Source: Octopus sinensis (taxonomy: Eukaryota). From it: 64,000 bases of DNA. Both the position numbers and the translations under genes were made by a program. The stretch covers positions 15,872,001-15,936,000 of the forward strand of contig NC_043022.1 of the NCBI RefSeq assembly GCF_006345805.1. Reading direction: 5' to 3'. The notes beneath the pieces are model-generated. The model ran no database searches. It was not told the DNA's origin and saw only the letters and a program-made list of their open reading frames with translations. Below are positions 805-39,368 of this stretch, piece by piece; the first letter of the stretch is position 1, and each line of letters opens with the position of its first letter.

Positions 805-1980
805 TCAGATTATTCTGATGCTTGTTCCTCCGTTGGTTGTGGTGAATTTGCGATGTCTCTCTAAATTAACTCTTGACACGTTGACTTTTATTTTCGAACA
901 GTATCCTCTATCTTCGAGCCTTTTAAATACCCAAAGTCTCCTGTTATCAAGGGAGTAATAGTTTCCTTCGTGTAGTGCGACAGTTATGGTTGGAAAGTCT
1001 CCGATACTTTTTCTACCGGCCCTTATAGCTTTCACTGTGTCCTCAAGACTAGCACCACGGTAAAACTTTCGTCGAATGGAACTTTGTGAAAACCGAATTT
1101 CTGATGGTTTTAGTTCCATACTTGATGGCATTCGTGTCATTTCAGATAATTTTACTTCCATTTCTGATGGTTCTAATTCCACTTCTGATGGTTTTACTTC
1201 CATTTCTGATGGTTCTAATTCCACTTCTGATGGTTTAAATTCCACTTCTGATGGTTTTACTTCCACTTCTGATGGTTTTACTTCCATTTCTGATGGTTCT
1301 AATTCCACTTCTGATGGTTCTAATTCCACTTCTGATGGTTTTAATTCCACTTCTGATGGTTTAAATTCCGTTTTTGATGGTTTTAATTCCACTTCTGATG
1401 GTTTTACTTCCATTTCTGATGGTTTAAATTCTGTTTTTGATGGTTTTACTTCCATTTCTGATGGTTTTACTTCCATTTCTGATGGTTTAAATTCCGTTTT
1501 TGATGGTTTTACTTCCATTTCTGATGGTTTAAATTCCGTTTTTGATGGTTTTACTTCCGTTTCTGATGGTTTTACTTCCATTTCTGATGGTTTAAATTCC
1601 GTTTTTGATGGTTTTAATTCCACTTCTGATGGTTTTAATTCCACTTCTGATGGTTCTAATTCCACTTCTGATGGGTTAAATTCCGTTTCTGATGGTTTTA
1701 ATTCCATTTCTGATGGTTTTAATTCCACTTCTGATGGTTTTAATCCCATTTCTGATGGTTTTACTTCCACTTCTGATGGTTTAAATTCCGTTTCTGATGG
1801 TTCTAATTCCATTTCTGATGGTTTTACTTCCACTTCTGATGGTTTTAATTCCATTTCTGATGGTTTTACTTCCACTTCTGATGGTTTTAATTCCACTTCT
1901 GATGGTTTAAATTCCACTTCTGATGGTTTAAATTCCACTTCTGATAGTTTTAATTCCACTTCTAATGGTTTTACTTCCAT
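805..1980 (-). CDS. Intronless gene: N-terminal heptad-repeat array fused to a ~100-aa ParB/sulfiredoxin-like domain (391 aa from first ATG)
   Basis: Open frame 805-2022. First in-frame ATG is at 1980 in GAAATGG context (the track's 2022 start is GTG). Non-repetitive C-terminus IRFSQSSI...FPTITV...YYSLDNRRLWVFKRLE...RKFTTTNGGTSIRII looks like a folded domain. TATA+Inr lie upstream with no intervening ATG. Fold assignment is inference. Confidence 0.75.
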   Translation of the reverse strand: MEVKPLEVELKLSEVEFKPSEVEFKPSEVELKPSEVEVKPSEMELKPSEVEVKPSEMELEPSETEFKPSEVEVKPSEMGLKPSEVELKPSEMELKPSETEFNPSEVELEPSEVELKPSEVELKPSKTEFKPSEMEVKPSETEVKPSKTEFKPSEMEVKPSKTEFKPSEMEVKPSEMEVKPSKTEFKPSEMEVKPSEVELKPSKTEFKPSEVELKPSEVELEPSEVELEPSEMEVKPSEVEVKPSEVEFKPSEVELEPSEMEVKPSEVELEPSEMEVKLSEMTRMPSSMELKPSEIRFSQSSIRRKFYRGASLEDTVKAIRAGRKSIGDFPTITVALHEGNYYSLDNRRLWVFKRLEDRGYCSKIKVNVSRVNLERHRKFTTTNGGTSIRII

Positions 1981-2022
1981 TTCTGATGGTTTAAACTCTG
2001 TTTCTGATGATTTTAGTTCCAC
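1099..2022 (-). repeat. Coding 21-bp tandem array, 44 units (consensus approx. RTGGAA(T/G)TAAAACCATCAGAA)
   Basis: 924 bp = 44 x 21 with no frame-breaking indel or stop; translates as 44 heptads, unit 43 diverged (MTRMPSS). Confidence 0.95.
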
Positions 2023-2208
2023 TTCCTTTCTCTCTCTTTATATATGTATATATATATATGCTCAGTCAGTCACAAAAGCAATAAGTATTTAGTCCAACTC
2101 AAAACCCAACCCAGTTAGGCCTTCGCTATAATGATACAAAATTAAACCAAGTGCAGTTTCTAGTTCTTCTTAGCTTGGATCTACACACTTTGTCTCTCTC
2201 CAATGTGA

Positions 2209-2623: not shown

Positions 2624-3600
2624 CCCTTTCGTTACAATATTTCTGACCAAAATACACCCCTCGTGAGTTTCAATTAAATTCTAAAATAATCATGAATTTA
2701 GACTAGTTTCATTAAACAACTGTAACCTTTTTTACTTATCAACATATTAATGTGATATTTGGAACATAATTAAAAAAAGGGTTCTTAATTTTATTGCATA
2801 AGTTTTGTCTTAAAGGGACTTTAATTACAGATAAATCCAGGTAAACTGAGAAAAAGGTAAAATATCAATATTTTGTTTAAACATCACCATAGAAAATGAA
2901 TCATCAGCTAATATTCAAATGGGTATGCAACAAAATTTTGACATAGAAGAATTGTGCACATCACTAGATCACCAGTTGAATTTAATGCACAACTGAACAG
3001 GTGTACCATAAAGGTGAAATAAACTGAAATACTGGAATCCACCTAAATCCACCGCAAGTTTGACCGAACTAAAGAAATCGGTCAAAAAATAATATACGGC
3101 CCTGGTTATGGTATGGAAGTGATAAATTCCAGACCACATCGTACCCTAGGCCATGCTGACTAACATTATTTTCCCTGTAGTACGCAGCATCTGCTTCACA
3201 AATTTTCCAAACTTTGATCCCTCATTTTGTGTTTGTTTACAATCTGCGAAACAGTTTGTTTCCACAGTGATCGCTTCCTAAGAAAGACTCAGAAAAATTG
3301 CTAATAAAAACATTTTTTAAAGTTTTTACTTCATTCCAATGTAAAATCGTCTTTGCTGTCGCTATCCCAGCTTTCAGTTTCTTCAGAATCGCTGCTTTCG
3401 GTTTCAGATACGGAAATATCCCATTCATTCTCGTACACCATGTTCTTTTGTACCTCATTCATTCTTTTTCTCGATATCTCCATATTCTCCGTTGAAAAAC
3501 CTTTAGATTCGGAATCACTGCTTGATAGCATGAAACTCCTATCCATTTTCAAAGTTGAAAAAGAAAAAAATCGAACCGAAAAAATGTGGGGAAAAAAGTC
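2624..3600 (-). mobile_element. Decayed, internally deleted piggyBac-type DNA transposon
   Basis: Terminus CTAA|CCCTTTCGTTAC at 2620-2635. Minus-strand remnants with stops/frameshifts: K*GIKVW, CEAD, SQHGLGYDVVWNLSLPYHNQGRILFFDRF/FSSVKLAVDL (3030-3230; matches the DNxFTS catalytic motif), acidic Ser-rich N-terminus (3331-3546), FVAY end near 2925. Confidence 0.75.
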
Positions 3601-5082: not shown

Positions 5083-5485
5083 CAATGTTGTTGACAGGGC
5101 TATTAGAGAAAAGAAACAGGCTTGGAAGGACTAGAAGAATGGTGGCAGCAGGGAATTGTATCAGACTGCCAGAAGGGAAGCTAGGAGATAGGTTTATTTA
5201 GCCAGAAGGGAAGCAGATAAGAAAAAATTTGCCAATGTTCTGCACCATGAGAACCAAAGACTTGAGATATTTCATGTTGCAAGACAGTGTGTGAGAGACA
5301 ATTGTGATGTGGTAGGAGAGAAATGTGTTCGCATGGATGATGGTTCTCTTGCGCTAAATGAGGCTGCAAAGAGAGAGGTTTGGAGATGCCACTGTGAAAG
5401 GTTGCTCAATAAAGAAAATGAATAGAAGAAAGAGAGTCTGCCAGATGTCGACCCAACAGAGGGACCAGCTATCCGAGTTGACAGT
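5083..5485 (+). mobile_element. RTE-clade LINE ORF2 fragment (endonuclease-RT linker), pseudogenised
   Basis: NVVDRAIREKKQAWKD*KNGG...LEIFHVARQCVRDNCDVVGEKCVRMDDG...WRCHCERLLNKENE*...EGP; three in-frame stops. Confidence 0.75.
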
Positions 5486-5539
5486 ACATATATACATATA
5501 TACACATTTTTTTTTCTAGTTTCTGCTCCATGTTGCAGC

Positions 5540-6340
5540 CATGCTGATGCACTGCCGCTTTGTGCTTGAAACCCAGGCTATTGCAGTAACTGGTACTGAA
5601 GTGTGATGGCATTGCTGGGATCTTTGGCACTATGCAGTGTCGTCCTGTTCTGACATTGGTGTAGCTTTCAATGTCAAAATTTGGCACAATTCCTTCGAGG
5701 ATCTTCCAGATATATATTACTGCATACCTCTCCCGTCTTCTCTCCAGGGAGTAGAGTCTTAGCTGTTTCAACCTTTCCCAGTAGCTGAGCTGTTGCAAAG
5801 AGACGATCTTCTTTGTGAATCTTCTCTGGATTGCTTCAAGGTCCACTGTTAATTTCACACTGGTGGGTGACCATAGCTGTGAGCAGTAATCCAGGCGGTT
5901 GAGGACGAATGTCCGCCAGAGGACCATCATGGTTTCCTTATCTCTGGTTCTGAATGTTTTTAGGATCCATCCAGCCAGTCGTCTGCACTTTGTCGCCATC
6001 CTGGTAATGTGCACTTGGAAAGAAGTACCATCACTCATTTCGATACCTAGGTCCCTCACTGATTTAGACTCTGGGATTGAAATTCCCTGTAGACCGGTGT
6101 ACCGTGTAAGTTTCATATTCAGTTTTGGATGCTGGTAGTGCAGGGCTTGGAATTTTTCAGCATTAAACTGCATATTATTATCCTCAACCCATCTGTAAAT
6201 TGAGTCCAACTCCTGCTGCAGGTGTATAACATTGCTGGGGTTCTGTGTTTTCTGCAAGACTTTAGTATCATCTGCATAGCTTGCAAGGGTGGCTATCCGG
6301 GCACTTGAGGGCATATCTGAGAGGGCCACTATATATGCCT
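5540..6340 (-). mobile_element. CR1/L2-group LINE, 5'-truncated reverse transcriptase C-terminal fragment
   Basis: YADDTKV, MQFNAEKF, RDLGI, LDYCSQLWSP, LEAIQRRFTK, SYWERLKQLRLYSLERRRER in ORF 5469-6353. Confidence 0.9.
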
Positions 6341-6537
6341 CTGTTACCAACATGAATTAAAATACTTTTATTTATAATTTATTTTGTATGCTAAAAATAT
6401 CTCAATTTCTTTCTTTTGTGTTTTCAGATTTCAAAATAAAGATATAAAAGATAATGGACCTCTAAAGGAGAGAATTGATTTCTCATCATCAATATTATCA
6501 CTGCCATATTGAAAGTTGTGTTTAATGGACATTAAAG

Positions 6538-8116
6538 ATGGCTGCAGTGTTTGAAACGGGCGATGAATCTGCAGACACCTGCAATCAGGTGACTTATGAG
6601 GACAAGATATTTCACAAGGTTGAAAATTTCTTAAATTGTGCCGTAGACAATCACAACCATGTTAAAAATAATGAATCTGATTGGCTGAGCTTGGAAGGAA
6701 CTAAACCAGACACACAAAGCGAACAAGCACAACACCAAATCCATGGTGAAAACTTTTTAAATTCCAAGAATATTTCCAAAGCGAAGCCAGGTCCTGGAAA
6801 TAGGATTTCAAATGGTGTTGTTTGTAGTATGAAAGAATTTCCCCAAAATTCTTGGGATAAAACTTGTAAATTCTCAAAAAAAACAAATTCTCAAATTGAA
6901 CTTGAAGGGAATTCCTCTACTGAATCAGAATCGCTGTCCAAACTCCAAGAAGAAAGCATCGAAACTGAAGTGCCTTCGACATGCAAATCTTTCGACATGT
7001 GGGAAAATACCATTTTAAAGACAGATAATTCCACCAAGAATACTGAAAGTACAAAAGCATTAAACGTTTCCGCGGATGCTGGCAAGCAGGTTAATTGTTT
7101 TAATAATACATATGGTTTCAAGGATGATTTGAAAATGGACTGTGAAGAACCAGTAACAGAGACTAGTCAACTCAAAGATGGTCAGTCATCACCTAGAATC
7201 AATTCTACTTCAGAAGATAAATCGTTCACACCAAATTTTACAGATGACAATGTCAAAACCTCAGAGTCTTCATCATTACTGAATCACGAACATATATATT
7301 CCAAAACTGACAACAGAACTAAATGTGCTGTAGACACATCCTTACCAAATGCACATCGGTTAGCAGAGAATGAAGAAAATGTTTCCAAACTCGAACCGAA
7401 AATGACAAAGAACTGTTTGGAAAATAATTTATCGGGAGGAATGACAAAAAGTGCTGAAAAGCAGCCAAATCCGGACAGGTGTTCAAATATATCTAACTTA
7501 CGCAAACACTGTACACCTTGTCAAGTTATAGTTCAGGATTTCTTCAAAGAGCTGAATATTGATCTTGTGGAATTATCCCGGAATTTCCCAGTGAAACACA
7601 TCCAGAAAAGGCCTCCTGGAAGACCAAGTCTCCTGCGCCAAACAGATATTTCAGAGAATCGATTTTTCCATGATGGCAATCAGGAAATGACAGGTGATGG
7701 TGCCAACAAGAATAACAATAGTGTGAAGACCAAGAGAAAACCAGGAAGAAAATGTAAAAAGCTCTCGGAGAAGAGGAAGCGGACATTCTCGCTGGAATGG
7801 CCAGGTGTGAAAACTTCAGTGACTTTATGGATGAACAGGATAAGTACAAAGAAAAACATTTTAGTGTTGGTGGTGATGATGATGATGATGATGAAGAGGA
7901 AGATAATCTACCACTTATGTCTGTTAAGAATAATCTTCACCAAACTCAAATGTCTGCTTTATTGAGAAACAGCTTAGAGAACTCTGCCGCTGGTGAAACA
8001 GAAAAATATGACAATGTCACTAAGAATAGAGATGTTGAGAAAAAGACTGCCAACACCATTCCTTCATCTACAACTATCAACGGTGTTGAGACACAGCAAT
8101 CAGGATCGCCCAAAGG
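6538..8116 (+). CDS. Zinc-finger gene, first coding exon (low-complexity S/T/N/E/K region, basic KRPPGRPS and KRKPGRKCKK motifs, acidic patch); apparent 1-nt deletion at 7756-7760
   Basis: Acceptor TTTTCAG ends 6427; ATG 6538 with in-frame stop at 6523. ORF 6538-7965 overlaps a -1 frame open from 7758 that ends at donor AAGG|GTAAGT (exon end 8116, phase 2). Confidence 0.75.
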
Positions 8117-8212
8117 GTAAGTCTACACTTTGAGTGCCATATTTTCGTTTGCACTAGCAGACTAATTTTGTTAAAAATTATTTATTTTTAAACATTTTTA
8201 ACTACATAGATA

Positions 8213-8572
8213 TTGGGTTGTCCAAAAAGCTTTTTCAGTTTCTTTAAGCAAAAGCAAGTTTTAAACCCAAAGCAATTTATTCAATCAGTGATCTAATTAC
8301 CATTTCATTCCAGTATCTTCTGGGTAGATCCATTATTCTCTGCTCAAAGAATTTCCTGTCTTTAGACAAAAATTTCTTCCAGGTGTATTTTCATATCTTC
8401 TTCAGAGTTGGTCTGTCCATTCAGTGTATTTTGGTGAGTCCAAAACAGATGGAGATCTGAATGCAGAATACGAACAAGGAGGGTGCCGCAAAACTTCCCA
8501 GCCAACCCCCAGTAATATTAGTCACGTCTGCAAAGAAGTGTGTAGTCTGGTATTGTCATAGTGAAAAACAAT
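8213..8572 (-). mobile_element. mariner transposase 3' relic with TIR
   Basis: IVFHYDNTRLHTSLQT*...GWEVLRHPP (HDNARPH / HPPYSPDL equivalents); TA|TTGGGTTGTCCAAAAAG end at 8211. Confidence 0.75.
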
Positions 8573-8574
8573 TA

Positions 8575-8882
8575 GCAAGTACTGGGCACTTCTGGTGGAC
8601 CACTGCATTTTATCCAAATTGATGGTTCCGTGCCGGTGGCATGTAAAAAGCACCATCCGAACGTGACCGATGCCAACGCTGCCTTGACTGGCTTCTGTGC
8701 CGGTGGAGCATAAAAAGCACCCACTACACTTACGGAGTGGTTGGCATTAGGAAGGGCATCCAGCTGTAGAAACTGTGCCAGATCAGACTGGAGCCTGGTG
8801 CAGCCTCCTGGCTTCCCAGACCCCGGTCGAACTGTCCAACCCATGCTAGCACGGAAAACGGACATTAAACAATGAACGATGA
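8575..8882 (+). mobile_element. SINE family D (RTE tail)
   Basis: Two GTGCCGGTGGCA subunits followed by the shared tail. Confidence 0.7.
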
Positions 8883-10293
8883 ATCTCACCAAATTGACAG
8901 CATAACCTGATTAGGGCGGTTCACCGTGCTTCTCCCTTCACCATTTTGATATTCGAGTTTGGGTTTATAGCAATAACCAAAACATTTGGCATTATATCGT
9001 ACTGGAGACGAAGACCTATCAAGGCAATAAAACCAGTCATGGCAGATACCATGTCACACAAATGGCACCTGTGTCAGTAGTACATAAAACCACTCATTAC
9101 ACCCTCTGGGGTGTAATGAGTGGTTTTCAAAAGCATTCCTACACATGTCCTCCACTCCTTACATTTTTGTGGACATTTTTTTCCTTTTACTGACCCATTT
9201 AGATTTGCTTTTAGTTTCGTCAGTTTTCTTTATTTTCTCTCTTTTTTAATGAATTCGGAAGTAAAATGTACAGGAGTGGCTGTGTGGTAAGTAGCTTGAG
9301 TTCAGTCCCACTGCGTGGCACCTTGTCTTCTACTATAGCCTCGCGCTTTTGTTTTTTTCCCTCATAATATCAAAGGATTATTATTTTGGTAATAATTTGA
9401 CCCTACTGTTGTTTTTCTTCTTCTTCTTCTTCTTCTCTGAAATATGCTTTCTTTTAATAAAAACATTTTTTTCATTATTACTGTGACCTCTTTAGTAGCA
9501 TCCCCCCCCCCCCAATTTTTATTTCTCTCTGCCTATAAATAGAAATGTAACCTTTTCTATAAAACTGAAAGTGTTGATCGTGGAAATACAGCAGCAAAAT
9601 TTATTTGTTAAACCTTCCAACATTTTCTTTGCTGTTTGGTACATAACGGCTGAGGTAAAAAACACAACAAATATCTTACAAACTATAGAATTTTCTCAAT
9701 AAAGCCAAGAGAAAAAGATGTTTTATAAACACATTCTGCCAGTATACGAAGTTTAAAAGTGTTTAGTTACCTAGAAATTATGTTAAAAATTGCCGTTCAA
9801 ACCGAAAAGATCCAAAAAAGTGTGATAAAATAATCTCAAAAGGCATAAAATAAGGACAAAAATAACAAGATTAAATTACAAAAGCATTCAATGTTAGACT
9901 GGATATCATAATTTTAAGGGTTCTAGTCAGGAGATGTAAGATAATTGATGAGTCAAAAGTTTAGTGAGTTAAAAAAGACAACAAATATCTTACAAACTAT
10001 AGAATTTTCTCAATAAAGCCAAGAGAAAAACACATTCTGCCAGTATACGAAGTTTAAAAGTGTTTAGTTACCTAGAAATTATGTTAAAAATTGCCGTTCA
10101 AACCGAAAAGATCCTAAAATAGTTAAATAGTAAGTTAAAAGAAAAAGCCCTGATCGAGGATTATTTAACATTTCATTTTGATTAAAGTGAAAGTAAAGTA
10201 GCTTTCCTTTGTCATTCTTTTTCGAGTGCAAAATAAACTCTGATGCAACGTCTCGCACACACACATATACCCGGATGTGTGTGTGTATCTGTA

Positions 10294-10505
10294 TTACTCT
10301 TTTTACTCTTTTCTTGTTTCAGTCATTTGACTGCGGCCATGCTGGAGCACCGCCTTTAGTCGAGCAAATCGACCCCGGGACTTATTCTTTGTAAGCCCAG
10401 TACTTATTCTATCGGTCTCTTTTGCCGAACCGCTAGATGACGGGGACGTAAACACACACCAGCATCGGTTGTCAAGCAATGCTAGGGGGACAAACACAGA
10501 CACAG

Positions 10506-10550
<45 letters not shown>

Positions 10551-10719
10551 CATATATACGACAGGCTTCTTTCAGTTTCCGTCTACCAAATCCACTCACA
10601 AGGCATTGGTCGGCCCGGGGCTATAGCAGAAGACACTTGCCCAAGATGCCACGCAGTGGGATTGAACCCAGAACCATGTGGTTGGTTAGCAAGCTACTTA
10701 CCACACAGCCACTCCTGCG
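10294..10719 (-). mobile_element. SINE family A, full length (tRNA head, CORE-like block, internal (TA)/(TG) tract, GTAAAAGA tail)
   Basis: Head GGAGTGGCTGTGTGGTAAG...GGTTCAATCCC; CORE-like CTTGGGCAAGTGTCTT. Roughly 30 full or partial copies in the window. Confidence 0.85.
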
Positions 10720-10998
10720 TATTATGTATATATTTTTGTTACTTTTCATTTCTTTTGCTCGCTTGCGTTTCTGGTGTGCTAAATTTTCTGGAGAACAATT
10801 CTTGGTGGTTAAGACCGTAGCGGATCTTCTTCTAGCGTAAGGGTTTCCACATAGTGGTAAAAAAAAAATTCCCCCTTATATTTACGTATGAAATACTATT
10901 TACTGAATCTCAGTTTTTTATATGCTAGACCACTGGTGTTAAAATTGATGTTATCAAATTAATATCCAATTTTTCACCCTCATTTTGATTTTAATTTA

Positions 10999-11048
<50 letters not shown>

Positions 11049-11269
11049 TTACTCTTTTACTTGTTTCAGTCATTTGACTGGCCATGCTGGGGCACCGCCT
11101 TTTAGTCGGGCAAATCGCCCCCACCCCCCAGACTTATTCTTTGTAAGCCCAGTACTTATTCTATCGGTATCTTTCACCGAACCGTTAAGTTACGGGGCGT
11201 AAACACACCAGCATCGGTTGTCAAGCAATGCTAGGGGGACAAACACAGACACAGACACACACACACAAC

Positions 11270-11300
<31 letters not shown>

Positions 11301-11466
11301 CATATATACGACAGGCTTCTTTCAGTTTCCGTCTACCAAATCCACTCACAAGGCATTGGTCGGCCGGGGCTATAGCAGAAGACACTTGCCCAAGATGCCA
11401 CGCAGTGGGATTGAACCCAGAACCATGTGGTGGTTAGCAAGCTACTTACCACACAGCCACTCCTGC
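11049..11466 (-). mobile_element. SINE family A, chimeric copy
   Basis: Left half matches the 11803 copy, right half matches the 10294 copy. Confidence 0.85.
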
Positions 11467-11746
11467 GTATTATGTATATATTTTTGTTACTTTTCATTTC
11501 TTTTGCTCGCTTGCGTTTCTGGTGTGCTAAATTTTCTGGAGAACAATTCTTGGTGGTTAAGACCGTAGCGGATCTTCTTCTAGCGTAAGGGTTTCCACAT
11601 AGTGGTAAAAAAAAAATTCCCCCTTATATTTACGTATGAAATACTATTTACTGAATCTCAGTTTTTTATATGCTAGACCACTGGTGTTAAAAATGATGTT
11701 ATCAAATTAATATCCAATTTTTCACCCTCATTTTGATTTTAATTTA

Positions 11747-11802
<56 letters not shown>

Positions 11803-12014
11803 TTACTCTTTTACTTGTTTCAGTCATTTGACTGGCCATGCTGGGGCACCGCCTTTTAGTCGGGCAAATCGCCCCCACCCCCCAGACTTATTCTTTGTAA
11901 GCCCAGTACTTATTCTATCGGTATCTTTCACCGAACCGTTAAGTTACGGGGCGTAAACACACCAGCATCGGTTGTCAAATGATGATGGGGGCACAAACTC
12001 AGACACACACACAC

Positions 12015-13639: not shown

Positions 13640-14236
13640 CTGGTGCCGGTGGCACATAAAAAGCACCAACCGATCGTGGGATCCTGGAAGATCTCGCTGT
13701 GCTTGAGGAGACCTGTTGAGTCAAGTGCATGTACATGAACATCGAACCAAATATCAATGGAAACAGTAGTTGTGATACCTGTGCCGGTGGCACATAAAAA
13801 GCACCATCCGAACGTGACCGATGCCAACCCTGCCTCGAATGGCTTCTGTGCCGGTGGCAGATAAAAAGCACCATCTGAACGTGGCCATTGCCAGTGCAGC
13901 CTCCACTGGCTTCTGTGCCGGTGGCACATAAAAAGCACCATCCGAACGTGGCCGTTGCCAGTGCAGCCTCCACTGGCTTCTGTGCCGGTGGCACATAAAA
14001 AGCACCATCCGAACGTGACTGATGCCAGACCCCTCTGGCACCTGTGCAGGTGGCACGTAAAAAGCACCCACTACACTCGCGGAGTGGTTGGCGTTAGGAA
14101 GGGCATCCAGCTGTAGAAACACTGCCAGATCAGACTGGAGCCTGGGGCAGCCCCTGGCTCCCCAGACCCTGGTCGAACCGTTCAACCCGTGCTAGCGCGG
14201 AAAATGGACGTTAAACGATGATGATGATGATGATGA
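13640..14236 (+). mobile_element. SINE family D with five ~67-bp internal tandem subunits (13781-14075)
   Basis: GTGCCGGTGGCACATAAAAAGCACC units at ~13781, 13848, 13915, 13982, 14044; (GAT)n tail. Confidence 0.8.
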
Positions 14237-15290
14237 GGGTTGACAACAGGAAGAACATCCAGCCATAGAAAATGTGAGGGGCATGCTTGGAAACTTGGAT
14301 ATTAAAACAATTATTATGACCAAAGCAATTAGCTACCAGAATCATTAAATTCCAGGTAAATTGCTTTGCAGTGTTTTGTCTATCTTGATGTTCTGAGTTC
14401 AAATTCCGTCAATGTCGACTTTGCCTTTCATCCTTTCAGGGTCAATTAAATAAGTACCAGTTATACACTGGAGTCGATGTAATCGACTTAATCCCTTCCC
14501 CTAAATTTGGGGCCCTTTGGCTTCCAATAGAAAGGGTTATTATTTTTGAGGTGGCAAGCTGGTAGAATCGTTAGCACACTGGACAGAATGCTTAGCAGTA
14601 TTTCACCTGTCGCTATGTCCTGAGTTCAAATTCCACTGAGGTTCACTTTGCCTTTCATCCTTTCAGGGTCGATAAATTAAGTACCAGTTGAGTACTGGGG
14701 TCGATGTAATCAACTCATTGCCAAGCTGCTCCTGTGGCAAAAATTATTATTATTATTATTTTACTCAGTATTTTACTCATTGCTACGCTCTGATTTCAAA
14801 TTCTGTTGAGGTCAACTTTACTTTTCATCCTTTCGAGGTCATTAAATTTAGTACCAGTGATATACTGGGGTCAATGTAATTGACTTGTTCCCTCCCACAA
14901 ATTTCCGGCTTTCTGCCTTTGGTAGACATCCGTGCCGGTGGCACGTAAAAAGCACCAACCAATCATGGCCGTTGCCAGCCTCGCCTGGCACATTAAAAAG
15001 CACCCACTACATTCATGGAGTGGTTGGCATTAGGAAGGGCATCCAGCTGTAGAAATACTGTCAGATCAGACTGGAGCAGCCTCCTGGCTTCCCAGATCCT
15101 TGTCGAACCCTCCAACCCATGCTAGCATGGAAAACGGATGTTAAACGATGATGATGATTGTTATTATTATTATTGAAGGCAAGGAGCTGTCAGTATTGTT
15201 AGCACACTAGACAAACACTGCTGAGTGAGAGTGTAACTCCCATGAAATCAATGGATCAGGTTTCAATCCTTAGTCAAATTCATTTAGTGT

Positions 15291-15687
15291 TTACTCTTAC
15301 TCTTTACTCTTTTACTTGTTTCAGTCATTTGACTGCGGCCATGCTGCAGCACCGCCTTTAATTGAGTAACTCGACCCCGGGACTTATTCTTTTGTAAGCC
15401 CAGTACTTATTCTATCGGTCTCTTTTGTCGAACCGCTAAGTGACGGGGACATAAACACACCAGCATTGGTTGTCAAGCAATGCTAGGGGGACAAACACAG
15501 ACACACGCATATATATACATATATACGATGGGCTTCTTTCAGTTTCCGTCTACCAAATCCACTCACAAGGCTTTGGTCGGCCCGAGGCTATATAGAAGAT
15601 ACTTGTTCAAGGTGCCACGCAGTGGGACTGAACCCGGAACCATGTGGTTGGTAAACAAGCTACCTACCACACAGCCACTCCTGCGCC
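15291..15687 (-). mobile_element. SINE family A, full length, ~120 bp upstream of the acceptor
   Basis: Same head, body and tail. Confidence 0.85.
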
Positions 15688-15804
15688 TGTTTGTTGTTGT
15701 TAGTTTTTGTTTTTATTATTAATGTTATTTTCTTTTATTTTTCTCTTTTTTCAATGAAAGACTCACATTTTCTGTTTGGTTTTTTTTTTTGTTTTATTTT
15801 CTAG

Positions 15805-17014
15805 ATTGTCGACCAAACAAGTAATTCCTGCAATCATCGAAGCTGCTCCAAGTCTTGGCAATGTCACCATTTCTCCATATATTTCTGAATCAACAAATAA
15901 CATTTCTTCTGCTATCAACGCCAGTGTCACCACCAATCCTTCTGCGACCACCGCCGCTACTGACGATGACGAAGCTACTATATTCACCACCGTCTCTCTC
16001 GCCACCAACACTGAATGTAACTCTACAAACGCCATCACCAACCCCACCAATTCTGCTGTTTCCTCCTCCTCCGCCTCTCCGTTCTCTTCATTTCCTGGTG
16101 ACCCCGTCACGCTTACTCCGACAATTGGAAACGGAGGCAGCGTACAATTGGGAGAGGAAACACAGAAGCAAAGCAAGGATGGCGCACACCCAAAACCAAA
16201 TGACAAAGGCGGTAAGTTCTTGAACGCCAACACCACAACAGTTACCACTTTTGCCAACAACAACAGACCTCATTGTGAAAACCTCAGTGTGAAGACATCT
16301 GGTCAACGTTGTGTTACTTCGACAAAGCCCAAGTGTAAATACCATGGATTGAACTCGGCACCTTGTCGTAAGTTGTACAAGTGTAAGAAGTGTGGATTGG
16401 AAGCAAAGTGCTTGAGCGACATCCAGGCACACATGGGTGGCACCCACTCAGAGTTTTGTATGTACAGGTGTCCATATTGTGTTCCTCGGAATCGTGTGAA
16501 GACAATAAATTCTATAGAATTCGAAGTGCTTCGAAGTAGCAACACCAATGTGTCGTCGCAGTCTTCAGTGAAGAAAAAGACCCCTTATTACACCAGCAAC
16601 AACAATAGCACCACCACCACCACCACCACCACCTCCTCCACCACAACCACCACCACCACCAACAATGGCAAGAAGAAGAAAGTGAACCATCAAATACAGT
16701 TACAGAGAGAGAAGAAACGGAAGCTGAACTACTATTATCGGAACCAGCATGAAATCAAAAAATACAAAAACACCAAGATCACATGCGAATATTGCCGGAA
16801 GTTGGTGAATCAGTCGAACATTTCGCGACATTTGAACAGTAAAAGCTGCAAAGGGTTAAAAAAGAACACAGAAAAACAAAACGTAAACGACAGGGAAAGA
16901 ATAGTGATTAAGAAATACCAGAAAGTAAAATGTAACACTTGTCAGAAACAGATATCGCGGACAAACCTCTCAAAACATTGCAGGATTTGTCCAAAAGAAA
17001 ACCTGCACAACTAA
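15805..17014 (+). CDS. Zinc-finger gene, terminal coding exon: one C2H2 finger, a CPYC half-site and two C-terminal C2HC-type fingers
   Basis: Poly-T tract + CTAG acceptor ends 15804; first base A completes GG+A (Gly), phase-compatible with the 8116 donor. Motifs CKKC-x12-H-x4-H, CEYC-x11-H-x5-C, CNTC-x11-H-x3-C; TAA at 17012-17014. Confidence 0.8.
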
Positions 17015-22527: not shown

Positions 22528-23978
22528 TTCTCGACACGATCAAGGAGATCTTGTTTTCACTGAAACCTGAGTGTCCTTTTTGGTCAGCTGAAAGCAGTTT
22601 TGGCACAAATTTGGCTGACACGCATCTCATACCCAAATCTTCAGTGATAATGGGCTCAACTGAACTGTAACTAAGGCGACGAGCTAGCAGAAACGTTAGC
22701 ACGCTGGGCGAAATGCGTAGCCGTATTTCGTCTGCCGTTACGTTCTGAGTTCAAATTCTGCCGAGGTCGACTTCGCCTTTCATCCTTTCTGGGTTGATAA
22801 ATTAAGTACTAGTTACGCACTGGGGTCGATGTAATCGACTTAATCCGTTTGTCTGTCCTCTCTGTGTTTAGCCCCTTGTGGGTAGTAAAGAAATAGGTAT
22901 TTCGGCTGCCGTTATGTTCTGAGTTCAAATTCCGCCGAGGTCGACTTTGCCTTTCATCCTTTCGGGGTCGATAAATTAAGTACCAGTTACGCACTGGGGT
23001 CGATGTAATCGACTTAATCCCTTTGTCTGTCCTTGTTTGTCCCCTCTGTGTTTAGCCCCTTGTGGGTAGTAAAGAAATAGGTATTTCGGCTGCCGTTACA
23101 TTCTGAGTTCAAATTCCGCCGAGGTCGACTTTGCCTTTCATCCTTTCGGGGGCGATAAATTAAGTACCAGTTACGCACTGGCGGCGATGTAATCGACTTA
23201 ATACGTTTGTCTGTCCTTGTTTGTCCTCTCTGTGTTTAGCCCCTTGTGGGTAGTAAAGAAATAGGTATTTTGTCTGCCGTACGTTCTGAGTTCAAATTCC
23301 GCGAGGGTCGACTTTGCCTTTCATCCTTTCGGGGTCGATAAATAAGTACTAGTTACGCACTGGGGTCGATGTAATCGACTTAATCCCTTTGTCTGTCCTT
23401 GTTTGTCCCCTCTGTGTTTAGCCCCTTGTGGGTAGTAAAGAAATAGGTATTTCGGCTGCTGTTACGTTCCGAGTTCAAATTCCGCCGAGGTCGACTTTGC
23501 CTTTCATCCTTTCGGGGTCGATGTAATCGACTTAATCCCTTTGTCTGTCCTTGTTTGTCCCCTCTGTGTTTAGCCCCCTGGTGGGTAATAAAGAAACAGA
23601 TTTGATGATGTCCCCTCACAGCTGCACACAGATCTGTGATGTTTTCCTCAGTTCTGCTAGTTGTGGGTCTCCCAGAACATTTGTCACTATCAACATTATT
23701 GGTGCCACCTTGGAAACATCTGAACCACTCGTACATTCGAGTGTGGCTCGTGAGCTCCTCTTTCTGCGACTCTGCATGGGCCTCTGAGCAGGTACCACCA
23801 TGACCGCTTGCTCCGTCATGATCATCTTCCTTCCAAGCATCGCTGTAAACAGCAGAAGTGAGCAAGAACGTTAGAACTCGGTGCACACGCACAGCAGAGT
23901 TCCAGGTCAATGTGTGCCAAGTGGCTTCACACTGCATGCTTTAACTTTGTTACTATGGCAACAGTCCGGATACTTATT
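22528..23978 (-). mobile_element. mariner 5' half relic of the same family, interrupted by a SINE array
   Basis: RMYEWFRCFQGG...SGRPTTSRTEENI (23610-23750) continues after the array as SSVEPIITEDLGMRCVSAKFVPKLLSADQK (22570-22670). Confidence 0.8.
22675..23596 (+). repeat. Tandem array of SINE family B: one headed copy plus four headless ~184-bp copies
   Basis: Units end AAAGAAATA at 22895, 23079, 23263, 23445, 23596. The central GCCTTTCATCCTTTCGGGGTCGATAAATTAAGTACCAG block recalls the Meta-type SINE domain (recollection). Confidence 0.9.
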
Positions 23979-30224: not shown

Positions 30225-30660
30225 TCCACTTATGCATACCTTTCCTTCTTGGGACACAAAACTCTACTTGTGAAGACCTGTTGAGGCAAGTGAAAATCAA
30301 AATCGATCAACATCAATGGAAATTGCAGCTGTGATACCAGTCCCGGTGGTACACAAGAGAACCATCCGAATGTGGCTGTTGCCAGCGCCTCGCCCTGACT
30401 GGCCTCGTGCCGGTGGCACGTAAAAAGCACCATCCGATTGTGGCCGTTGCCAGCCTCGCCTGGCCCCTGTGCCAGTGGCACATAAAAAGCACCCACTACA
30501 CTCATGGAGTGGTTGGCGTTAGGAAGGGCATCCAGCTGTAGAAACTCTGCCAGATCAAGATTGGGCCTGGTGCAGCCTTCTGGCTTTCCAAACCCCAGTT
30601 GAACCGTCCAACCCATGCCAGCATGGAAAGCGGACGCTAAACAATGATGATGATGATGAT
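30225..30660 (+). mobile_element. SINE family D
   Basis: Subunits plus RTE-type tail (GAT)n. Confidence 0.75.
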
Positions 30661-31112: not shown

Positions 31113-31555
31113 ATCATCATCATCGTTTAACGTCCGTTCTCCATGCTAGCATGGGTTGGACGGTTCAACTGGGGTCTGGGAAGCCAGAAGGCTGCATCAG
31201 GCCCAGTCTGATCTGGCAATGTTTCTACAGCTGGATGCTCTTCCTAACGCCAACCACTCCGTGAGTGTAGTGGGTGCTTTTTACGTGCCACCCGCACAGG
31301 GGCCAGACGGATCTGGCAAACGGCCACGGACGGATGGTGCTTTTTACGTGCCACCAGCACGGGGGCCAGGCGAGGCTGGCAACGGCCACGATCGGATGGT
31401 GCTTTTTACGTGCCACCGGCACGTAGGCCAGTCAGGGCGGCGCTGGCAACGGCCAGGATTGGATGGTTCGCTTACTTGTCACCGGCACTGGTATCACAGC
31501 TGCAATTTCCATTGATGTTGATTGACTTCGATTTTGGTTCTGCTTTCTGATATCT
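31113..31555 (-). mobile_element. SINE family D
   Basis: Four GGTGCTTTTTACGTGCCACC-type subunits plus tail. Confidence 0.75.
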
Positions 31556-32744: not shown

Positions 32745-34480
32745 ATGGTAAAGGGAGTCCTTAGGAGGTCAGTTGACAGGCTAGAAACAGCAGCCAAAGC
32801 ACCCTCATATTATGAGTTAACGAGGGTGTAGCTATGAGGTCACTTGACAAAGCAGAAATAACAACTAAGTCTTCCTGAAATTATGAACACACGAGGGAGT
32901 CTTGACTTGTTAGAAATAGCAGTCAAAATTCCCTCAAATTATGAGCCAATAAAGGAGTCCCTGTGAAGTCACTCAACAGGCTAGAAACAGCAGCCAAAGC
33001 ACCCTCATATTATGAGTTAACGAGGGTGTAGCTATGAGGTCACTTGACAAAGTAGAAATAACAACTAAGTCTTCCTGAAATTATGAACACACGAGGGAGT
33101 CTTGACTCGTTAGAAATAGCAGTCAAAATTCCCTCAAATTATGAGCCAATAAAGGAGTCCCTGTGAAGTCACTCACAGGCTAGAAATAGCAGCCAAAACA
33201 CCCCTAAATTATGAGTTAACGAGGGTGTTGCTATGAGGTCACTTGACAAAGTAGAAATAACAACTAAGTCTTCCTGAAATTATGAACACACGAGGGAGTC
33301 TTGACTCGTTAGAAATAGCAGTCAAAATTCCCTCAAATTATGAGCCAATAAAGGAGTCCCTGTGAAGTCACTCAACAGGCTAGAAATAGCAGCCAAAACA
33401 CCCCTAAATTATGAGTTAACGAGGGTGTTGCTATGAGGTCACTTGACAAAGTAGAAATAACAACTAAGTCTTCCTGAAATTATGAACAAATGAGAGAGTC
33501 TCTTTTTAGGATACATGATTGGCTAGAGATAACAGCCAAATCTCCCGTAAGTTATGAACCAATAAGAGAGTTGCTATACGATCTACTATGCTAGTAATAG
33601 CAGTCAAAACTCCCTTAAATTATGACACAATGAGGGAGTCTTAACTATTTGGAAATAGCAGCCAAAACTCCCACAAATTATGAGCCAACAAAGGAGTCCG
33701 TATGCAGTCATTCAACAGGCTAGAAATAGCAGCCAAAACTCCCTTAAATTATGACACAATGAGGGAGTCTTAACTATTGGAATGGAATAGCAGCCAAAAC
33801 ACCCCTAAATTATGAGTTAACGAGGGTGTTGCTATGAGGTCACTTGACAAAGTAGAAATAACAACTAAGTCTTCCTGAAATTATGAACAAATGAGAGAGT
33901 CTCTTTTTAGGATACATGATTGGCTAGAGATAACAGCCAAATCTCCCGTAAGTTATGAACCAATAAGAGAGTTGCTATACGATCTACTATGCTAGTAATA
34001 GCAGTCAAAACTCCCTTAAATTATGACACAATGAGGGAGTCTTAACTATTTGGAAATAGCAGCCAAAACTCCCACAAATTATGAGCCAACAAAGGAGTCC
34101 GTATGCAGTCATTCAACAGGCTAGAAATAGCAGCCAAAACTCCCTTAAATTATGACACAATGAGGGAGTCTTAACTATTTGGAAATAGCAGCCAAAACTC
34201 CCACAAATTATGAGCCAACAAAGGAGTCCGTATACAGTCATTCAACAGGCTAGAAATAGCAGTCAAAACTCCCTTAAATTATGACCCAATGAGGGAGTCT
34301 TAACTATTTGGAAATAGCAGCCAAAACTCCCACTAATTATGAGCCAACAAAGGAGTCCGTATGCAGTCATTTAACAAGCTAGAAATAGCAGCCGAAGCTC
34401 TCTTAAATTATAAGGCAATGAGGTCTCTATGAAGTCACTTAGTATGTTAGAAATGACAGGCAAAAAACTCTCCCAAATCT
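32745..34480 (+). repeat. Complex minisatellite of ~58/71-bp monomers with 200-, ~400- and ~130-bp higher-order periods
   Basis: CTAGAAA(C/T)AGCAGCCAAA recurs at 32781, 32981, 33180, 33380; monomers carry a CCC..AAATTATGA..GGG core. Confidence 0.9.
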
Positions 34481-34729: not shown

Positions 34730-36185
<1,456 letters not shown>

Positions 36186-38969: not shown

Positions 38970-39368
38970 TCATCATCATCATCATCATCATCGTTTAACG
39001 TCCATTTTCCGCGCTAGCACGGGTTGGACGGTTCGACCAGGGTCTGGGGAGCCAGGGTCTGGGGAGCCAGGGGCTGCACCAGGCTCCAGTCTGATCTGGC
39101 AGTGTTTCTACAGCTGGATGCTCTTCCTAACGCCAACGACTCCGCGAGTATAGTGGGTGCTTTTTACGTGCCACCTGCACAGGTGCCAGAGTGGTCTGGC
39201 ATCGGCCACGATCGGTTGGTGCTTTTTATGTGCCACCGGCACAGAAGCCAGTCGAAGCGGTGCTGGCATCGGCCACGTTCGGATGGTGCTTTTTATGTGT
39301 CACCGGCACAGAAGCCATTCGAGGCGGGGTTGGCATCGGTCATGTTCGGATGGTGCTTTTTATGTGCT
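38970..39368 (-). mobile_element. SINE family D
   Basis: Four subunits plus tail; similar copies at 20975-21275 and 40397-40700. Confidence 0.75.

Follow-up and report, generated by a model that had tools for sequence, protein, structure and literature searches.

How does a gene come to carry dozens of copies of its own beginning, and does the resulting extension become part of the protein? The question is raised by a locus at one end of a 64,000-nucleotide stretch of the Octopus sinensis genome (RefSeq assembly GCF_006345805.1, contig NC_043022.1, positions 15,872,001 to 15,936,000 of the forward strand; this whole stretch is the window below). There, on the minus strand, 44 copies of a 21-bp unit run in frame into a small domain with the predicted fold of ParB and sulfiredoxin (Srx). 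Taken as a whole, the reading that probably holds is that of an intronless gene, copy A of a diversifying tandem pair, in which a domain of the Tox-ParBL1 type follows a translated arm, a minisatellite templated on the gene's own first codons. The domain as such is not new; what is new is the self-templated arm, the hypervariable length of this arm, and a hyper-divergence between the two copies that is bounded by the domain.

Anatomy of the gene and its array

On the minus strand, window 805-2022 is a single open reading frame (ORF) of 405 codons plus stop. Cut in 21-nt steps from 2022, this frame falls into 44 in-register units with no indel or stop: units 1-42 are clean x-E-[LVF]-[KE]-P-S-[EK], unit 43 is a degenerate MTRMPSS, and unit 44 reads MELKPSE; 97 unique residues follow, from IRFSQSS... 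through SIRII. Tandem Repeats Finder arrives independently at period 21 and 44.0 copies. The count of in-phase units and the 97-residue unique domain given by an earlier, sequence-only reading of this DNA are confirmed. Periods 42 (88%) and 63 (87%) fit better than 21, with 0% indels at period 42, which indicates higher-order units. The GTG start of the ORF list is an artefact of the bacterial code, and the first ATG lies at 1980, in unit 3, codon 15 of that ORF. The product from this ATG has 391 amino acids and is on record as a single-exon gene in GenBank (GCA_006345805.1, CM016884.1), as expected if the gene is intronless, which the sequence-only reading had proposed. The features of the gene and its array are:

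805-1980, minus strand: annotated intronless coding sequence (CDS) of 391 amino acids that begins at the first ATG and closes with TGA at 805-807; the gene is copy A of a tandem pair (ORF and GenBank record)
1099-2022, minus strand: coding minisatellite, 44 x 21 bp, with a conserved head (units 1-3) and tail (units 42-44) and an interior that turns over
1120-1140, minus strand: unit 43, degenerate MTRMPSS, kept in four of four gene copies (unit alignment)
1099-1119, minus strand: unit 44, MELKPSE, on which the repeat was templated and which, by homologue starts, is the N-terminus that the domain had ancestrally; holds the ATG used by repeat-free homologues
2037-2044, minus strand: TATATAAA ending a (TA)n microsatellite, a candidate TATA box 64 nt upstream of the first ATG; overlaps an in-frame upstream stop TAA at 2038-2040; the frame upstream of the array reads RERKE

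Where does the repeat unit come from? Homologues that lack repeats open exactly with M-x-L-K-P-S-E-I-(R/F/Y)-(F/Y)-S-Q, among them a paralogue from O. bimaculoides (P0002, MLLKPSEIRYTQ...), and the domain boundary in bacterial relatives reads ...(I/V)-(D/N)-P-S-x-V-R-F-S-Q. Because homologue starts and bacterial boundary match, the P-S-E of every unit corresponds to the first conserved element of the fold. Judged by these alignments, the repeat unit is a copy of the domain's own first seven codons and unit 44 is the true N-terminus of the domain; the idea that the first motif of a small gene had been amplified is borne out by the repeat-free homologues, which begin at the same motif. The array has the makings of a coding minisatellite: 44 x 21 bp without indels, a frame continuous with that of the domain, and a copy number that varies among close relatives. 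The arm is a clear case of a protein extension drawn from a gene's own first codons.

Fold and conserved residues of the domain

What, then, is the domain that supplied the unit? Sequence libraries are of little help. Pfam gives no match to it even at E <= 10, PF02195 included, and searches of NCBIfam, PADLOC, PHROGs and PDB sequences and profiles, made with the octopus domain and its bacterial relatives, return no family for the domain itself. The identity of the domain comes from structure comparison and the literature only. An AlphaFold2 (AF2) model built with a 44-sequence alignment has a mean predicted local distance difference test score (pLDDT) of 96.3 over the domain and a predicted template modelling score (pTM) of 0.88. 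Its elements follow in the order strand, strand, helix, beta-hairpin, helix, strand, and the sequence D-N-R-R-L caps the helix after the hairpin. When the model is compared to the PDB with Foldseek, all 50 of the 50 matches listed belong to the ParB/Srx superfamily. The best is Noc (7ol9; E = 4e-4, template modelling (TM) score 0.55 on the query, probability 1.0), and the others include Myxococcus and Caulobacter ParB with analogues of cytidine triphosphate (CTP; 7bnr, 7bm8), plant and human sulfiredoxin (6ky4, 2rii), Atu1540, SbnI, PadC and KorB. In a viral structure library, every named match is likewise of ParB, Noc, KorB or sulfiredoxin type. With scores that are moderate but matches that are unanimous, the model makes a convincing case for a ParB/Srx fold, which the sequence-only reading had recognised from motif spacing. 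The domain and its motifs lie at the following positions:

808-1119, minus strand: Tox-ParBL1-type domain with a predicted ParB/sulfiredoxin fold, 104 codons, isoelectric point (pI) 10.6, net charge +12 (AF2, Foldseek, homologues)
1084-1092, minus strand: F-S-Q motif, of which the second residue is the family's conserved N-terminal Ser/Thr (Ser in copy A, Thr in copy B) and the Gln is nearly invariant (alignments)
934-948, minus strand: D-N-R-R-L motif, N-terminus of helix 61-72, directly after the beta-hairpin, at the position of ParB GERR and sulfiredoxin GCHR (alignments and model)
826-849, minus strand: K-F-T-T-T-N-G-G, the C-terminal motif, in which K93, T95, T96, N98 and G100 are kept in both kingdoms (alignments)

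Residues are numbered by a 106-residue query (window 805-1125). Five of them (N61, R62, R63, L64 and G100) are invariant in 44 of 44 aligned sequences, and P7, Q14, I17, F21, P45, I47, V49, T96 and N98 are nearly so. The picture is the same when 165 eukaryote-type domains are aligned together with 118 bacterial ones: both groups conserve P7, Q14, F21, P45, D60-N61-R62-R63-L64, F67, K93, T95, T96, N98 and G100, and octopus copy A keeps the whole set. D-N-R-R-L is kept in at least 97% of these 283 domains; P7, in 93% of the eukaryotic and 85% of the bacterial members. The position of S13 is occupied by Ser in 66% of the eukaryotic and 98% of the bacterial domains, while the octopus copies have S (copy A) and T (copy B). 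The family is large, with 1840 representative clusters at E <= 1e-3 in an exhaustive phmmer search and 309 at E <= 1e-10.

A family of bacterial toxin warheads

The description that the domain fits is that of Tox-ParBL1, made computationally by Zhang, de Souza, Anantharaman, Iyer and Aravind (2012, Biol Direct 7:18; PMC3482391). The family is predicted to have the ParB fold (93% to Thermus ParB in HHpred), and its signature combines an N-terminal Ser/Thr that is absent from classical ParB with an [NT][RT][RT] motif, mostly N-R-R, that is the equivalent of DGHHR/GxxR (PMC3482391). Its members stand at the C-terminal end of polymorphic toxins that carry HINT, RHS or filamentous-haemagglutinin modules, the type member being the Neisseria MafB-class protein NGK_2271; Imm-SUKH and Imm44 are the listed immunity partners. 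Metazoan members are listed too, and the domain is one of those derived from toxins for which a takeover by eukaryotes was proposed in 2012 (PMC3482391). Fold, Ser/Thr, N-R-R and, among bacterial relatives, the toxin context are all found here; thus, the octopus domain fits Tox-ParBL1, an assignment made by the published signature and description rather than by comparison with the type member. The same signature matches the suggestion that DNRR is the equivalent of GERR and GCHR and a variant known from toxin domains. In the literature searched, the family name is used in this sense only by Zhang et al. (2012), and the family has no Pfam model.

The bacterial side of the family can be followed from P0024, which is 40% identical to the octopus domain (E = 8.5e-12). 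In relatives of this protein the domain stands directly after PT-TG (P0179), after PT-HINT ending in ...LVHN (P0217, P0260) or after an RHS core ending in DPLGL (P0259). A locus search with a single bacterial query led to two loci from metagenome-assembled genomes (MAGs). In two metagenomic loci a small acidic DUF7660 gene comes next downstream (L002, 4013-4261; L005, 3384-3614, from an Acidimicrobiales MAG, in which the ParBL1 gene lies at 2758-3378); in P0257, the third independent context, the ParBL1 domain and DUF7660 are fused. This layout is as expected of a toxin and its immunity protein, and makes DUF7660, which is not among the partners listed in 2012, a candidate for the latter; Imm-SUKH and Imm44 were not seen, in an analysis that was not aimed at them. 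The recurrent pairing suggests a bacterial toxin-immunity pair that can be tested. At the octopus loci, no DUF7660-like sequence or partner gene was found, and the interval that separates copy A from copy B contains no notable ORF. Together with the description of the domain family in 2012, this speaks against the earlier claim that the locus is an undescribed system.

How close is the octopus protein to the systems that it resembles? Bacterial Tox-ParBL1 members share with it the predicted ParB fold, the N-terminal Ser/Thr and N-R-R. They carry a PT-HINT, RHS or PT-TG module before the domain and a small gene after it, whereas the octopus protein has no pre-toxin or trafficking module, no signal peptide and no immunity-gene neighbour. 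The N-terminal CTPase domain of ParB, Noc and KorB (PF02195) is similar in fold (TM score on the query ~0.55) and in the succession of a beta-hairpin and a helix with an Arg-Arg motif of phosphate-binding type; yet the octopus domain, with only 104 residues, shows no sequence match to PF02195 at E <= 10 and has DNRR in place of GERR. Also unlike ParB, it lacks a helix-turn-helix, a dimerisation domain and a ParA-binding motif: the protein ends 97 residues past MELKPSE, and the secondary structure of the model comprises elements of the N-domain and no others. Sulfiredoxin, treated in 2012 as an independent eukaryotic acquisition of the ParB fold (PMC3482391), is likewise a single eukaryotic domain of ~100 residues; the octopus domain differs from it in having D-N-R-R without the catalytic Cys of F-G-G-C-H-R, in an identity of 13-20% and in motifs of its own, FSQ and KFTTxNGG. 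Finally, ToxB (CdiA-CT) is experimental proof that a stand-alone warhead with the ParB fold and without a DNA-binding domain can be a toxin; it acts through the binding and hydrolysis of ATP and is toxic in plant cells too (bioRxiv 10.64898/2026.05.05.722872). ToxB came to light through PF02195 and is of the classical ParB lineage (the Tox-ParB of Zhang et al.), not of ParBL1, and the likeness considered here is one of fold; by analogy, and not as a member of the same family, it is the best available, nearest functional precedent for the octopus domain.

A tandem pair with arrays of variable length

The gene does not stand alone. O. vulgaris (L001, OX597839.1) has two copies ~4.6 kb apart: copy A, annotated with 573 amino acids, and copy B, a 200-residue ORF at L001 9875-10477 of which 158 residues are annotated (P0001). 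In O. sinensis, copy B lies 4.3 kb downstream of copy A on the minus strand, just beyond the edge of the window on the side of position 1 (L004, the O. sinensis locus, 15245-15826). The two copies do not end alike: in both species copy A stops five codons before copy B, where a TGA stands in place of GGA (window 805-822; IRII-stop versus IKIKGRKKK-stop).

Array lengths differ widely. Copy A has 44 units in O. sinensis and 70 in O. vulgaris, and copy B has 13 and 14, respectively; each length comes from one long-read assembly, and the comparison is between species and copies. In this sense the variable array length that the sequence-only reading anticipated is observed. All four arrays have in common a head, VELKSSE-TEFKPSE-MEVKPLE, and a tail, MEVKxSE-MT(R/P)MPSS-MEL(K/R)PSE, and their interiors differ by multi-unit blocks, such as a block of 5-6 units that is repeated in O. 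vulgaris copy A. Common ends and block-wise differences between them indicate unequal crossing-over within an array older than the duplication into A and B. A coding minisatellite can thus add hundreds of residues within the time in which sister species diverge.

Is such an array found elsewhere? Among the ~290 relatives retrieved, the octopus protein alone has an N-terminal heptad array derived from its own first codons, and a full-length search gave no further relative with an array. A DoxX-like membrane protein of 248 amino acids from Lysinibacillus sp. B2A1 (P0294) has N-terminal heptads SETE(M/L)GPSE / TVVKPSE, which resemble the octopus unit, and no ParBL1 domain; as a relative of the array it was rejected, its heptads being judged convergent low complexity.

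Composition and translation of the arm

Counted from the first ATG, the arm has 287 residues, a net charge of -41 and a pI of 4.4. It is made up of 28% E, 14% S, 14% P, 13% K and 11% V, so that P, E, V and K together account for 66%, and it contains 37 S/T-x-x-D/E (CK2-type) sites and a proline at every seventh residue; the composition is PEVK-like, and the arm is probably extended or disordered. Coding minisatellites and disordered arms of PEVK type are known, for example the PEVK segment of titin and the variable-number tandem repeats of mucins. The octopus arm resembles them in a unit that is a multiple of three and stays in frame, in fast changes of copy number by several units, in its share of P, E, V and K and in its proline periodicity; it differs in that its unit duplicates the N-terminal strand and turn of the adjacent domain itself. 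A heptad coiled coil was rejected because a proline at every seventh residue is incompatible with it, as it is with an alpha-helix, and a neuropeptide or secreted precursor because the protein lacks both a signal peptide and dibasic cleavage sites. Its K-P bonds hide nearly all of the arm from trypsin.

Would the arm be translated? The first ATG, 64 nt downstream of TATATAAA, and 14 further in-frame ATGs of the arm have A at -3 and G at +4. Given so many in-frame ATGs in good context, any transcript that includes the array should be translated through it, and sequence context favours translation of the arm. The units themselves offer a second line of evidence. Over the four arrays, the 141 units, none of which has a stop or an indel, fall into 30 types by nucleotide sequence and 26 by amino-acid sequence, and a minimum spanning tree of the unit types has 40 substitutions, 24 of them as single steps. 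As 7 of the 63 possible single substitutions in a unit create a stop, the probability that 24-40 random substitutions would create none is 0.009-0.06; these stop-free units are modest evidence that the frame is maintained.

A number of results count against this reading. No measured activity was found for any Tox-ParBL1 member in the literature searched, and exact-match look-ups of the protein returned the genome assembly only. In every repeat-free homologue the start corresponds to the ATG of unit 44, so a short product of 104 amino acids is possible. A 21-bp unit is in frame by construction, and two of the six frames are stop-free through the array, including an antisense ORF on the plus strand; the open frame is therefore weak evidence that the array is translated. 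The single-step variants among units comprise 20 nonsynonymous and 4 synonymous changes, a ratio that indicates no purifying selection on the amino-acid sequence of the arm beyond its general character. Structure prediction is not decisive either: an AF2 model of the full-length protein made without an alignment has a pLDDT of 41, with a faint, low-confidence hint of 4-residue strands every 7 residues, and a charge-hydropathy plot places the well-folded domain on the disordered side too and so does not separate it from the arm. Extensions of at least 25 residues were compared in 111 homologues; they are net negative in 40, net positive in 68 and strongly acidic in 12. With extensions that are mostly not acidic, the idea that the arm shields its domain in cis is weakened, and an acidic appendage as a rule of the family was rejected on the same count (68 of 111 net positive). 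Some small homologues do have strikingly acidic C-terminal tails (P0003, P0018, P0042).

1076-2092, plus strand: antisense ORF of 338 amino acids (SDGFNSTSDG...), a by-product of the stop-free repeat (two of six frames are open across the array); as a gene it was rejected as an artefact of the stop-free unit

What if only the domain is made? In the rival account that survives best, transcription or translation would begin at the ATG of unit 44, the product would be a ParBL1 protein of 104 amino acids, and the array would be a minisatellite of the promoter or 5' leader, derived from the 5' end of the gene. Homologues that start with M-x-L-K-P-S-E-I, an ATG in unit 44 that also has A at -3 and G at +4, a frame that is kept by construction with two of six frames open, unit variants that are mostly nonsynonymous, and look-ups that gave the genome assembly only are all in keeping with it. 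Yet the 15 in-frame ATGs in good context upstream of unit 44 would capture scanning ribosomes; TATATAAA stands a short way upstream of the array and does not follow it; the four arrays, with 141 units, are free of stops and indels; and both genome annotations place the array within the CDS. On this balance the short product is unlikely, if a contender to be taken seriously, and the translated arm is the preferred reading.

Divergence of the two copies

Arm length is only one of the differences between copies A and B. Their domains are 75-77% identical in protein, despite flanks that are ~99% identical: in every pairing of the four copies, the flanks agree at 98.7-99.6% (2.2 kb upstream, 264-280 bp downstream). 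Over 306 nt of the domain, A and B differ at 34-35 positions (11%), 31 of them nonsynonymous and 3-4 synonymous, with a nonsynonymous rate (dN) of 0.14, a synonymous rate (dS) of 0.045-0.06 and a ratio of the two (omega) of 2.4-3.2. At the flank rate of 1.2%, ~3.7 differences are expected, and the Poisson probability of at least 34 in 306 nt is 1.6e-21. Orthologue pairs differ in the domain by 5 nonsynonymous and 1 synonymous change in one case and by 7 and 0 in the other.

The changes are clustered. Eighteen of the 21 fixed A/B replacements fall within residues 4-55 (a stretch with the first strands, helix 27-35 and the opening strand of the hairpin), and the half that bears the motifs is nearly without them. 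Polarised with octopus paralogues, 6 sites are A-like, 3 B-like and 12 undecided, with changes on both lineages. The domain evolves at ~10 times the flank (neutral) rate and keeps all invariant residues, so relaxed constraint alone is insufficient; the excess of replacements between copies is indicative of diversifying selection such as conflict and immune genes undergo. Two near-identical tandem genes whose main differences are arm length and ~21 replacements in one half of a domain amount to a natural experiment for a specificity surface.

How firm is the case for selection? The binomial tests for omega > 1 depend on 3-4 synonymous changes, and their P values of 0.036 and 0.078 are marginal. 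The dS of the domain is ~4 times the divergence of the flanks, and gene conversion, either of the flanks or of the domain from another paralogue, may contribute to the contrast. Could conversion be its main cause, with adaptive substitution playing a lesser part? In this account flanks and array ends would have been homogenised between A and B, or the domain of copy B imported from a distant paralogue. The elevated dS (0.045-0.06) speaks for it, the shared arrays and ~3 kb of near-identical upstream sequence would provide the substrate, and copy B has states (IRYTQ, IVAG) in common with the octopus paralogue P0002. Still, the mixed polarisation (6 A-like, 3 B-like, 12 undecided) means that copy B is not simply of the P0002 type, dN/dS is 2.4-3.2 even if dS is taken at face value, and each domain type, A as well as B, is kept in both species. 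Gene conversion as the principal cause is, all told, rather improbable, and diversifying selection is retained as the probable explanation of the replacement excess.

A third possibility, that A and B are incipient pseudogenes under relaxed constraint, would make the replacement excess neutral drift and the array a junk expansion. Omega is at least 1 in all comparisons; copy A ends early and is without the C-terminal Arg (Arg/Lys) at position 106, which is 87-98% conserved in the family. Neutral decay, however, cannot exceed the neutral rate, and the domain differs at 11% against ~1.2% in the flanks; four ORFs are intact in two species, the residues conserved across kingdoms are kept except for R106 of copy A, and the changes cluster in the N-terminal half and spare the half with the motifs. 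Decay is very unlikely on these grounds.

Animal relatives and origin

The sequence-only reading had expected relatives among uncharacterised proteins of marine invertebrates, and they were found: homologues occur in bivalves (Mya, Tegillarca, Mizuhopecten, Mytilus, Sinanodonta), an annelid (Dimorphilus) and tunicates (Styela, Ciona), all annotated as uncharacterised. In most of them the domain stands at the extreme N-terminus, with no signal peptide and with a long low-complexity tail behind it, or is present in 2-3 tandem copies. In three invertebrate proteins of the latter kind (P0030, P0054, P0062), the first copy has N-R-R and copies 2-3 have degenerate motifs (for example D-N-E-L-L, Q-N-E-K-L and E-N-R-K-L), a pattern that suggests an active-plus-inactive tandem arrangement.

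Was the gene acquired from bacteria? The nearest relatives of the octopus domain are molluscan (43-52% identity, against 40% for bacteria), and the sampled eukaryotic members have in common a 5-residue insertion at positions 74-78 that the sampled bacterial clade lacks. GC content, at 0.40 in the domain and 0.34 in the array, matches that of the window (0.39), and the locus is set among octopus microsatellites, adjoining a probable reverse-transcriptase fragment of a long interspersed nuclear element (LINE). A recent bacterial transfer or an assembly contaminant, to which a family of polymorphic-toxin warheads and an intronless gene might point, is barely credible in the face of a syntenic tandem pair in the independent assemblies of O. 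sinensis and O. vulgaris, octopus repeats around the gene, a matching GC content, closest relatives among molluscs and the eukaryote-type insertion. Horizontal origin, which had been raised as a possibility, is on the evidence of sequence comparison an ancient event at the level of the family, as proposed in 2012; a recent transfer into the octopus lineage does not stand.

A possible history and function

How might these pieces fit together? An ancestor of animals or an earlier eukaryote would have acquired a bacterial toxin warhead domain long ago, and the family would have persisted in molluscs, annelids and tunicates as uncharacterised proteins free of signal peptides. Since the residues shared across kingdoms are intact (bar Arg106 in copy A), the N-R-R helix cap would be expected to bind a nucleotide phosphate. 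The conserved residues and the analogy to ParB, sulfiredoxin and ToxB suggest that the domain may carry out a phosphotransfer or hydrolysis dependent on nucleoside triphosphates, or possibly a nuclease reaction.

Slippage or unequal crossing-over would have multiplied the 21 bp for the first seven residues of the domain and so given rise to the arm. The array would then grow and shrink by multi-unit steps and, if translated from the first ATG, add ~290 acidic residues. What would these residues do? The role ranked first is that of a tolerated or bulk-adding spacer, the length of which would be nearly neutral. Ranked second is a polyanionic arm that would shield the +12 domain in cis, as a built-in substitute for the missing immunity protein. 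If the arm does regulate the domain, it would represent a new eukaryotic way to tame a bacterial warhead.

In a bolder version, which is a long shot, the A/B pair would be a toxin module that animals have domesticated for a system of conflict, for example innate immunity, allorecognition or a selfish element of toxin-antidote type. The warhead would be restrained by its own arm, possibly phosphorylated by CK2 and templated on the N-terminal strand, in place of DUF7660; arm length (13-70 units) would set the threshold for release, and diversification of the N-terminal half would track a target or an inhibitor.

Surroundings of the gene

Upstream of the ParBL1 gene, a 294-residue ORF at window 5469-6353 on the minus strand (L004 5628-6512, plus strand) has a weak match to RVT_1 and is probably a LINE fragment; it lies between the gene and its upstream neighbour. 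This annotated neighbour gene, with a 509-residue product, occupies window ~6538-11980 on the plus strand (L004 1-5443, minus strand) and extends beyond that locus. The neighbour's long exon, rich in Ser, Asn and Glu (a 475-residue ORF), has no Pfam match.

Rfam and tRNA scans of the window found no match anywhere in it. Large satellite-like tandem arrays lie at window 32776-34423 (periods of 200, 401 and 129 bp, 97% identity), 22723-23522 (184 and 366 bp) and 34742-35975 (long (CCAG)n tracts). Short tandem clusters of a 62-67-bp element (GGTGCTTTTTA[CT]GTGCCACC...) occur in both orientations at window 13779-14068, 30361-30493, 31273-31431 and 39156-39367; the element is probably an octopus interspersed repeat.

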